Shown here one piece after another: positions 710 through 3,700 of a stretch of 64,000 nt of DNA (position 1 is its first letter; every line of letters begins with the position of its first letter). The stretch is from Octopus sinensis (taxonomy: Eukaryota): the NCBI RefSeq assembly GCF_006345805.1, contig NC_043021.1, forward strand, positions 12,710,001 through 12,774,000, read 5' to 3'. The notes under the pieces were generated by a model. That model was not told the DNA's origin and did no database searches. It saw only the letters and a program-made list of their open reading frames with translations. A program made the translations under genes and the position numbers.

Positions 710-3700
710 CTACAATGAGACAAAACAAAACCTCAGAGTAAATGTGTGTGTGTGTGTGTGTGTGTGTGTGTGTACACGTGCACACACACACACACAAGCA
801 CATACGTACATGCACGCATATATATAATCAAGACATCGCAAAAAGGAATGGAGAATTACACATCTTCAAAACTTGTTTATTACAGTATTATTCTCATTAA
901 ATTCACATTAGATTCCAATCCAACACCTGTTTCTTCTGCATAATTGTCATATTGTCCTTTGATCTAGCATTTAGGTACATTTAGTTGGTTCATTTGCAGT
1001 GATATTCTCCTTTCTTACTTGTCCTATTTCTTCCTCTCCTACTCTTTTAACCATTCTTTTCTATTTGTCCCTGCCTGCTTGCATGACTCATTTGCACTTT
1101 ACTGCTAGTTATCTATCTTCCCTTCTCTGTCTGTCTATCTGTCTCTTTGTCCATCTGTCTGTCTCTCTCTGTCCCTCTGTCTATCTGTTTGCCTGCCTGT
1201 TTGTCTCTGTCTGTCTCTCTCTCTCTCTCTCTCTCTCTATCTCTATCTATCTATCTCTATCTAATCCACTTCACTTTAGAATACTTTCTTTCTCTCTCTT
1301 CCACTTCTCTCAGCACAGCCACTGCTTTCCCTTTACAGCCTGACAGAAATACAGTGTGCATAAGATATTTGAGGGCAGATTTACGTTTATAAAAAAAACA
1401 GATATACAATAACAGATAATAACTTTATTTATCAAAGAATGCTATGAAGATAAAAATAAACCCCTAAAACCATGACAGTTGCAGGAAATTTTGTATGCAT
1501 AACACTTGGAACTTCAGAAGGGTCTGCACATAACCATCTGTCATTTCTTCTCTTATCTATTTGATCTTAGTTGAAGTTTTTCTCATTTAAGAAAAGCCAA
1601 ATCAAATCTTCTTCTGCTGGATTTTTCAGTTTGTTTAAGAGTCTTTTAGATCTGATATAGTGATTTACTTTTGCTTTTTCTGACAAAGTGACCTTTCTAT
1701 TCCTTTACTACCCACAAGGGGCTAAACACAGAGAGGACAAACGGATTAAGTCGATTACATTGACCCCAGTGCTTAACTGGTACTTAATTTATCGACCCCG
1801 AAAGGATGAAAGGCAAAGTCGACCTCGGTGGAATTTGAATTCAGAACATAACAGCAGACGAAATACGGCTACGCATTTCGCCCGGCGTGCTTACATTTCT
1901 GCCAGCTCGCCACCTGACAAAGTGACCATTCCTCACCATATAAGACTTATACCTGATGTCTTTGTGAACGACATTTCTGACTGTTCCTTCTGACACATGG
2001 AAATCTTTTGCAATTGACCTGTTGGACTTTCTGGGATTGCAATCAATGGTCTGTTGAACTTGCTGGATAAATTCAGGTGTTCTGATGATTTCAGAGCATT
2101 TAGAATGCTTTTTATGCTTTGATACTGGTGATACGTTTCCATCTTCAGTCTTAGCTCCTTACAAACTTTGTAGACGAAAGATCTGGCAACTTTTAAAAAT
2201 TGAGATATTTCTAAATGACTATGCTCAGCCTTTATAACCACATTAACAGCATGCCTCTTCACTTCTTGAGTAAGCTGAGGACCTGCTATTATTATTTTCT
2301 GAAACAATGATTATACAAAGCGAGCAAAAAATGCAGCAATGACCCCAAAAACGGTATGTCCTCAAATATCTATTTCTTTACTACCCACAAGGGGCTAAAC
2401 ATAGATGGGACAAACAAGGACAGACATAGGTATTAAGTCGATTCCATCGACCCCAGTGCGTAACTGGTACTTAATTTATCGACCCCGAAAGGATGAAAGG
2501 CAAAGTCGACCTCGGCAGAATTTGAACTCACAGCGTAACGACAGACGAAATACGGCTACACATTTCGCCCGGTGTGCAAACGTTTCTGCCAGCTCGCCGC
2601 CTTTGTATGTCCTCAAATACCTTATGCACACTGTGTATAATGCAACAAACAAACAAAAAAACATGTGACTTGGTATTTTTGTATATTATATTATTAGAAA
2701 AAAACACCTTTAGTAATAGAATAAAAACAGTATGTCCAGTTAATGTCCCCAAAATCTGATATTGTTAATGAAGCGCCTCCCTTATACCTCTCTCTCTCTC
2801 ATCAGTAATAACTAGCCATGATCCACCAAATTCAGATACTTAAAAGGGAGATTTGGCTATTATTTCCAGCTAGCCATGTAACTAAATATCGACTCCCTAA
2901 GTGGTTTCTGTGTTCTCTAGTGTAAGGTCAAAATGCTCAGTGTGAACAAGACGGGTTTTGCTTTACCTCATACTGCTGACCCTTTGAGTAAGCCATTGCT
3001 GGTGCGGTGGGAAATAGGTAAACTCTCATTTTCTCCTTTGCTCGTTCGTATTTTTCCTTGGAATGGAAATTCTCGATACAACTTTCAAAGCTGAGTATCA
3101 GTTGTGAAGCAGATTCTATGAAATGGCAGCTTTCCTGAAATAGAATTTCAAAAAAAATTTTTTTTAATTAAACAAAAAAATTGGAATTGCTTACAGATTG
3201 GATGTTGGGTGAAAACTTAGGAGAAGCATGGGCATAATTCTGTAACCAAGGGTTGGGTTGCATAGGAAAGGTGTTTAATTGAAGATCTGTATCACTATCC
3301 AATGGTCTTAGAGTATTCAAAGATGATGCAAAACATTGTAGAACAAAATAAGTTTAGAGGTATATGCACATGTATGTACACATGCATACACACACACACA
3401 TACATACGTACATACATACATACATACATACATACATACGTACATACGTACATACATACATACGTACATACATACATACATTCTTTTATTCTTTCAACTA
3501 CTTTGACTACAACCATGCTGGAGCACCATCTTGAAGGGTTCAAGTTCCAGGACTTATTTCTTAAGCCTAGTACTCATTCTCTCGGTCTCTTTTGCCAAAC
3601 TGATATATATATATATATATATATATATACATATCTATCTATCTATCTATCTATCTATATATATATATATAATATATATATATATATATATATATATATA

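Follow-up and report, generated by a model that had tools for sequence, protein, structure and literature searches.

Loss of the proximal heme histidine from an octopus androglobin

Androglobin (ADGB) is a large protein of cilia and sperm that carries a rearranged globin; male mice need it for fertility, it is linked to cilia, it is the least understood of the animal globins, and the role of its heme is debated. We analyzed a stretch of 64,000 nucleotides from Octopus sinensis (NCBI RefSeq assembly GCF_006345805.1, contig NC_043021.1, positions 12,710,001 to 12,774,000 of the forward strand), called the window here, which contains part of an ADGB gene on the minus strand. The exon of this gene for globin helices E and F (the E-F exon, Table 1) aligns with Ser at the distal heme position E7 and with Leu at the proximal position F8, where most ADGBs have the His that would hold the heme iron. 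Below we describe the gene, the basis for placing these two residues, the history of position F8 in the family, and the changes that accompany its loss in octopus, and we weigh what the octopus domain may still do.

The androglobin gene and its E-F exon

Inside the window, the gene runs from its start codon to the exon of helix G and includes the calpain-like domain and domain II, with at least 21 coding exons placed; it extends past the low end of the window, and the IQ motif, helices A-C, and domains IV and V lie outside. The exons of the calpain-like domain match proteins named ADGB or androglobin, with ~93% identity to a fragment from Octopus bimaculoides and further matches to ADGB of birds, a tube worm, and a snail. 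A profile of these N-terminal ADGB fragments, searched against 1.8 billion representative proteins, recovered many full-length relatives, and a later homologue search gave “androglobin-like [Octopus vulgaris]” (P0254; 1,478 amino acids), the androglobin of the cuttlefish Acanthosepion pharaonis (P0253), and dozens of androglobins from molluscs, annelids, nemerteans, echinoderms, hemichordates, tunicates, and vertebrates. The best match to the window gene is the O. vulgaris protein (99%), followed by Acanthosepion and other molluscs. P0254 scores 46.2 bits against Peptidase_C2 (cut-off 23.8) and 136.7, 149.1, and 55.3 bits against Androglobin II, IV, and V (PF22068, PF22069, and PF22070; cut-off 27), matches as strong as those of other ADGBs, and in an alignment with 13 ADGBs its parts follow the order of the family: helices E-H, the IQ motif (core IAAVKIQTFWRGAYVRKIKRSR), and helices A-C. 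Its Pfam IQ score of 11.1 bits lies under the cut-off, as do those of other ADGBs (13.8-14.7 bits). By its sequence matches and domain order, the window gene is a true ADGB orthologue.

Read on the minus strand, the E-F exon is an open segment of 168 nt that translates to ESCHFIESASQLILSFESCIENFHSKEKYERAKEKMRVYLFPTAPAMAYSKGQQYE; it is preceded by a polypyrimidine tract ending in ...ctatttcag and followed by gtaaag, a canonical AG/GT context. Because P0254 contains this peptide exactly, as its residues 848-903, the exon is part of the annotated coding sequence, with the junctions (marked by slashes) ...FGDEETIMNQCSK/ESCHF...QQYE/NFKESLL, in which the upstream side ends NQCSK. The preceding exon is well conserved, with 72% identity (tblastn) to P0021, a decapodiform-like transcript from SRR27666069. 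What looked like an exon at 3353-3195, with an in-frame intron of 60 nt, was rejected: in P0021, in Patella, and in the NCBI octopus model, NQCSK is followed directly by ESCHF.

An unusual exon of this kind might be an artefact or the wrong exon, through an assembly or sequencing error, as a skipped pseudo-exon, or as the companion of an alternative exon or paralogue with a normal E-F segment, and a first word-index search with the exon peptide indeed gave no match. That empty search is not informative, given the exact copy of the peptide in P0254, and the exon is present in the NCBI gene model with identical junctions, and has an open frame and canonical splice sites. Skipping its 168 nt would delete helices E and F and would not rescue heme binding. 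The Leu at F8 is not a base-call error because the same 56 residues are encoded in an independent O. vulgaris assembly, where the exon differs at two synonymous sites; the first-pass annotation of this DNA, made from its letters alone, had excluded such an error on the codon itself and had noted that adenosine-to-inosine (A-to-I) editing is unable to convert CTA to a His codon, and both points stand. The two codons that it had reported, TCT for Ser and CTA for Leu, were re-read at the same places in the window sequence. Nor did a second intact ADGB paralogue appear: with the cuttlefish E-F segment as query, tblastn against the window gives the E-F exon as its sole match (E = 4.5e-10), no second E-F-like exon was found in the window or in the complete 72-kb locus by tblastn with cuttlefish and limpet E-F segments, and there is one Octopus ADGB sequence among the top 120 matches. 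We consider an artefact or a wrong exon most improbable.

Positions E7 and F8 across the family

The E-F exon aligns without gaps to the corresponding segments of Acanthosepion, Patella, Haliotis, Mizuhopecten, the ferret Mustela (ESYRFTEQSLTILKAVGHVIASFKDKGKLSVAMKDLQAAHYP), and other ADGBs. A profile built from 13 ADGB E-G segments matches solved globins in the PDB, and it places exon residue 8 on the distal E7 His and exon residue 40 on the proximal F8 His of giant haemoglobin A1 (...LKSQHDP) and of cytoglobin (...LGKAHAL); in earthworm globin c, only the F8 His falls inside the stretch aligned with the profile. Single-sequence phmmer searches of the PDB found no globin match for octopus, nor for the cuttlefish control. 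Both the real ADGBs and the match of the ADGB profile to PDB globins uphold the placement of Ser at E7 and Leu at F8 that the first-pass annotation had taken from a gapless alignment, and the wider ADGB alignment places no other His at F8 of octopus. The human sequence used for that earlier alignment is nearly identical to the ferret segment, and the spacing of its residues fits the Cys787, Gln792 (E7), and His824 (F8) of human ADGB (Reeder 2024, PMC11077535; PMC9249397). The alignments thereby confirm the assignment of Ser to E7 and Leu to F8 in octopus ADGB. Leu at F8 is flanked by Tyr at F7 (TAC) and Phe at F9 (TTT).

In our detailed alignment, F8 is His in the eight gastropods and bivalves and Leu in octopus alone. 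On the sequences sampled, the loss of the F8 His is younger than the split between octopus and the decapodiform lineage of the cuttlefish, because both the cuttlefish A. pharaonis (PLHCP) and the decapodiform-like transcript P0021 (ALHCP) keep it. The timing also bears on the suggestion, made in the first-pass annotation, that the change belongs to a lineage that carries its oxygen on hemocyanin: this link fails because cuttlefish, limpets, abalone, whelks, and other hemocyanin-bearing molluscs retain the F8 His. Further afield, it is kept in Patella, Haliotis, Mizuhopecten, Aplysia, Pomacea, Solemya, the nemertean Lineus, the hemichordate Glandiceps, and the tunicate Styela, and in most vertebrates, including the ferret, a frog, Pogona, duck, elephant shark, pike, anchovy, and medaka.

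A survey of 224 ADGB E-F segments, isoforms included, found His at F8 in 178, Tyr in 18, Leu in 10, Cys in 10, Ile in two, and Val in one, with a gap in the remaining five. Tyr occurs in several fishes (the teleosts Lampris, Hippocampus, Knipowitschia, and Neosynchiropus, the gar, and the horn shark Heterodontus), and also in the axolotl, the finch Lonchura, sea cucumbers, the land snail Bradybaena, and the sampled insects. Cys is found in the teleosts Lota and Paramormyrops, Val in the teleost Bagarius, and Ile in the centipede Strigamia and the rotifer Brachionus; Leu is shared with octopus by the teleost Cyprinodon, the shark Pristiophorus, and Hyla sarda, and Hydra is likewise without the F8 His. 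As in octopus, the proximal His has been lost recurrently, in many independent lineages, from genes that are otherwise intact. The other F8-replaced ADGBs mostly keep the vertebrate-type Gln at E7 and the His of the FG corner, so that F8 alone is changed, often to Tyr, whereas in octopus a whole set of pocket residues is changed.

The expectation at E7 itself had to be revised in part. The first-pass annotation took Gln as the distal residue, which is correct for vertebrates; in the ADGBs of protostomes and invertebrate deuterostomes, E7 is Asn or sometimes His and a conserved Gln stands at E10, and the E10 Gln is retained in octopus. The “distal Gln” of the family thus seems to sit one helical turn apart in vertebrates (E7) and in protostomes and invertebrate deuterostomes (E10).

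Pocket residues, substitution rates, and predicted structure

We aligned the whole permuted globin domain of 17 sequences (octopus and 16 others), without gaps in the E-F exon, and called a column conserved at 80% or more. Octopus deviates at 19 of the 61 conserved globin-domain columns, whereas in the linker and IQ motif it deviates at none of the 11. Three of the changed positions are occupied by the same residue in all 16 other ADGBs: E3 (exon residue 4), Arg in the others and His in octopus; F8 (exon residue 40), His in the others and Leu in octopus; and B14 (F180), Phe in the others and Ile in P0254. The His-Phe pair just before helix G, at the FG corner, is present in 15 of the 16 and replaced by Gln-Tyr in octopus; its His, exon residue 54, is found in 186 of the 224 surveyed sequences. 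At F4, a conserved Leu is Met in octopus, and at CD1, six residues after the C2 Pro and equivalent to human Tyr976, P0254 has His where its relatives have Tyr or Phe. The B10 Phe is kept. Apart from these residues, the linker from helix G/H to the IQ motif (P0254 residues ~936-960) is markedly shorter in octopus and is without the ...SRP...RGSAKP... of other molluscs and hemichordates.

The globin signature has disappeared along with these residues. Against Pfam Globin (PF00042; gathering threshold 22 bits), the E-G segments of cuttlefish, P0021, Patella, and Mizuhopecten score 23.3, 22.9, 36.6, and 26.1 bits, respectively, and neither P0254 nor the octopus exon alone gives any PF00042 match at E ≤ 10. 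Of the features by which a heme globin is recognized, octopus has neither the F8 His, nor His or Gln (or the Asn of the family) at E7, nor an aromatic CD1, nor the B14 Phe, nor a PF00042 score.

We then asked how the changes are distributed along the gene by counting sites at which octopus alone or cuttlefish alone departs from the state shared by most of six outgroups, of which five were molluscs and one a nemertean. In the E-F exon the ratio of octopus-only to cuttlefish-only changes is 18:1 (p ~ 1e-4), and helix G (8:3) and helices A-C (13:5) lean the same way. The calpain region (28:22), domain II (16:10), and domain IV (14:15) show no octopus excess. Identities tell the same story: over the E-F exon, octopus is 32% identical to P0021 and 32% identical to Patella, and P0021 and Patella are 59% identical to each other, whereas in the flanking domain II/C2-like region the identity to octopus is 70% for P0021 and 64% for cuttlefish over conserved-outgroup sites. 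The poorly conserved middle region also has a raised ratio (58:17), as does, to a weaker degree, the C-terminal part (39:23), which would be expected if the changes in the globin were the first visible part of a general loss of function across the gene. Such decay is very unlikely on the remaining evidence, since the reading frame of 1,478 residues is intact, all ADGB Pfam domains are still strong matches, the three regions named above show no excess, and coding sequence is constrained between the two octopus genomes compared below. The middle region corresponds to P0254 residues 331-700 (window exons ~22786-7042), and part of its 58:17 could be alignment noise in low-complexity sequence.

To gauge constraint, we set the window against the ADGB locus of O. 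vulgaris in a chromosome-level assembly (GCA_951406725.2, OX597838.1). The two are collinear, with introns ~95-96% identical and many indels, and exons 99.4% identical, so that the window represents a close relative or a divergent haplotype and is distinct from that assembly; exons are thus ~8 times less diverged than introns (~4-5%), and the placed coding sequence contains 12 synonymous and 2 non-synonymous differences in 2,496 nt. The E-F and G exons together differ at four sites, all of them synonymous, which, small as the numbers are, points to purifying selection still acting on the altered E-F/G sequence.

AlphaFold2 models of the octopus and cuttlefish domains, made with the same 17-row alignment as input, have the same predicted helix layout and similar overall confidence (predicted local distance difference test [pLDDT] 78.7 for octopus and 79.6 for cuttlefish), but the confidence of the FG loop after F8 is 62 in octopus vs. 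88 in cuttlefish. Foldseek found no globin match in the PDB for the octopus model or for the cuttlefish model, a control that retains the His; the circular permutation and the IQ insert are the most likely reason.

The window is otherwise repeat-rich (Table 1). An ADGB intron holds a tandem array of four ~171-nt units, each an open frame of 56 codons (PLVGNKEIGISSAATFH...RLNKYQL...), which resemble a short interspersed nuclear element (SINE)-like repeat scattered through the window, and the intron between the E-F and G exons contains fragments of a mariner/Tc1-like transposase frame. An open frame of 105 codons in intron 1 has two C2H2 zinc-finger-like motifs (HICRACERECNSAGGVKRHAKVHE...FSCQFCTRHCRSLAGLKSHIRSQHQ) and may belong to a transposon or represent a nested gene fragment.

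Table 1. Features of the ADGB gene and of the rest of the window (positions are those of the window)
Feature	Position	Strand	Remarks
ADGB gene, part inside window	568..43987	-	Start codon through calpain-like domain and domain II to G-helix exon
ADGB exon 1	43919..43987	-	Start codon at 43987
Exons of the calpain-like domain	27867..33924	-	
Exons of Androglobin domain II	4251..7042	-	
ADGB exon inside Androglobin domain II	4531..4684	-	...PGQLVVEPYSWKSLVIGQPILMLRTTATRAVTLTLPPG
ADGB exon preceding E-F exon	4251..4365	-	RHVLKFMMTSPLGYSIHLSSDSPFIFGDEETIMNQCSK; end of Androglobin domain II (C2-like)
E-F exon of ADGB	2967..3134	-	Globin helices E and F; 56 codons, phase 0 at both ends
Ser codon TCT	3111..3113	-	Globin position E7, exon residue 8; ADGB profile alignment
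Gln codon CAA	3102..3104	-	Position E10; conserved Gln of protostome and invertebrate-deuterostome ADGBs
Leu codon CTA	3015..3017	-	Proximal position F8, exon residue 40; family and profile alignment
Gln-Gln codons CAG CAG	2973..2978	-	Just before helix G; near-invariant His in relatives at exon residue 54 (HHFE, xHF)
ADGB exon following E-F exon	568..709	-	Helix G onward; NFKESLLRLLSKSVPFNAETLFAWRAFFFDLNWKNTPVTFQQQPCKL
Tandem array of four units	26465..27133	-	ADGB intron
Open frame with zinc-finger-like motifs	41801..42115	-	ADGB intron 1
Transposase frame fragments	1844..2310	-	Mariner/Tc1-like
GAT/GAC-type low-complexity run	15455..16250		Long; open in all frames (poly-Asp, poly-Ser, or poly-Thr)
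AT-rich microsatellite block	49900..51000		~14% G+C

A globin domain probably without histidine-held heme

The reading we favor, with a probability of about 0.6, is that the globin domain of octopus ADGB, apparently a single-copy gene, has no His heme ligand, is probably heme-free, and is kept as a calmodulin-binding scaffold. After the split from cuttlefish and squid, F8 changed from His to Leu, the FG-corner His to Gln, and E3 from Arg to His, and on the same branch E7 from Asn to Ser, B14 from Phe to Ile, and CD1 from Tyr or Phe to His. The heme pocket would thus have been relaxed and then re-fixed, with the domain retained under purifying selection as a folded helical module, its IQ motif embedded, between domains that are still needed; octopus ADGB may then serve cilia or sperm as a calpain-like scaffold that is regulated by calmodulin and has no gas or redox chemistry. 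We infer the absence of heme and the scaffold role from the substitutions, their restriction to one lineage, the lost globin signature, and the continued constraint. The “heme-less pseudo-globin” proposed in the first-pass annotation gains weight from the lost pocket residues, the lost PF00042 match, and the acceleration in octopus.

The first-pass annotation had offered two His of the exon as non-canonical ligands, and neither suits the role: residue 24 sits in the EF loop, ~16 residues before F8, and was rejected as a proximal ligand on its position, and residue 4, which replaces the invariant Arg at E3, is not plausible as a proximal ligand. No His of the octopus domain appears positioned to ligate iron, and the domain is probably heme-free.

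Several observations weigh against this conclusion. Heme may be held non-covalently or through other ligands, and the predicted fold, the B10 Phe, the E10 Gln, and the pocket hydrophobics F5, I20, F23, F58, and L62 are retained. Three His have been gained (exon residues 4 and 24, and CD1) and a Tyr stands beside F8, making a remodelled pocket possible. The acceleration of the middle region means that the octopus excess is not all globin-specific, the signal of purifying selection in the globin exons consists of just four substitutions, and octopods were sampled as a single species pair.

The main alternative is that heme binding persists in the octopus domain, through a non-canonical axial ligand or without one, the candidates being the F7 Tyr (Cys if TAC were A-to-I edited to TGC), the CD1 His, the E3 His, or a small molecule in the proximal cavity. 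The helical layout is predicted to be unchanged, B10 Phe, E10 Gln, and several pocket hydrophobics are kept, the sequence is apparently under purifying selection, and the octopus-specific His at E3, in the EF loop, and at CD1 appear as three old His vanish; Tyr at F8 in 18 of 224 ADGBs suggests, moreover, that the family may tolerate non-His ligation. However, Leu at F8 is unable to ligate iron, the octopus Tyr is at F7 and not at F8, with no alignment gap to shift it, and the gained His are poorly placed: residue 24 would lie far from the iron, and residue 4 one turn beyond E7, at the pocket entrance. In established globin structures CD1 contacts the heme edge, and a His there would touch that edge and not the iron. 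Several independent heme contacts have changed together and the PF00042 match has been lost, a pattern that resembles relaxation and not redesign, and we think retained heme binding unlikely. The specific version in which heme is bound through a rewired pocket, with the F7 Tyr or an edited Cys, or the CD1 or E3 His, replacing the proximal His, is more doubtful again; if true, octopus would have an animal globin with new coordination chemistry instead of a dead domain, and in a weaker, family-wide version the F8 Tyr of many ADGBs would make tyrosinate-ligated heme a normal state.

A heme-free octopus domain would have close precedent. All hexapod ADGBs are without the E7 and F8 residues, and their globin domain has been termed degenerate (Prothmann et al. 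2020, Front Genet, PMC7457136). As in octopus, the calpain-like and other domains are kept, the E7 Gln or His and the F8 His are gone, and a domain search misses the globin. The two differ in that the octopus event is an independent one inside Mollusca, confined, as sampled, to the octopus branch of cephalopods; in that F8 is Leu in octopus and Tyr in the sampled insects; and in that octopus keeps the E10 Gln, an E-F-G segment that can be aligned without gaps, and a conserved IQ motif. Hexapods and octopus also both rely on hemocyanin or tracheae and not on blood globins, which in our analysis is not the cause. With hexapod ADGBs lacking both residues already published (PMC7457136), and with F8 replaced in many lineages, the novelty of the octopus domain was at first overrated. 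The octopus loss is a real finding and well documented, but the same type of loss is already known from hexapods. Our literature search found no paper on androglobin in cephalopods.

Human and mouse ADGB share with octopus the multi-domain architecture, the circular permutation (helices E-H, IQ, A-C), and the aligned E-F exon (PMC11077535, PMC9249397), as well as the ESC motif, with the Cys equivalent to Cys787 kept. Human ADGB has Gln792 at E7, His824 at F8, and Tyr976 at CD1, against Ser, Leu, and His in octopus; the human protein is a heme binder with nitrite reductase activity, and its nitric oxide complexes are five-coordinate (PMC11077535, PMC9249397). A human H824G/Q792G globin domain nevertheless binds calmodulin normally, even under heme depletion, and the cleavage of SEPT10 is calmodulin-dependent and oxygen-independent (PMC9249397, Keppner 2022). 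The centrosomal localization of the isolated ADGB globin domain is likewise unaffected by F8 and E7 mutations, and the Adgb of Tetrahymena has no globin domain at all (bioRxiv 10.64898/2026.06.19.733359). Outside the family, the RsbR N-terminal domain, the phycobiliproteins, and photoglobin (PMC8717448) would, on our reading, resemble the octopus domain in having a globin-type helical fold without the need for a His-ligated heme; they are anciently diverged prokaryotic or plastid families, some of which bind other chromophores, whereas the octopus case would be a recent loss inside a heme-binding animal family.

The closest full-length relatives of octopus ADGB are those of Acanthosepion (Sepia) pharaonis (P0253) and P0021, which have identical exon lengths and the same predicted helix layout as octopus; unlike octopus, they retain the F8 His, the HHFE, the E3 Arg, the E7 Asn, and the B14 Phe, with PF00042 scores just above threshold. 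Octopus and cuttlefish ADGB thus form a closely related matched pair, without and with the F8 His, that is suited to biochemical comparison. If the ligands have indeed been discarded while selection still maintains the domain with its IQ motif and the remainder of the protein, octopus ADGB would be a natural experiment arguing for a structural or calmodulin-related job of the globin module, and it would agree with the human-cell mutant data in suggesting that the core function of this module is independent of heme. For the family as a whole, the replacement of F8 in about one-fifth of the sequences surveyed, across many phyla, if undescribed, is probably of broader interest than the octopus case.

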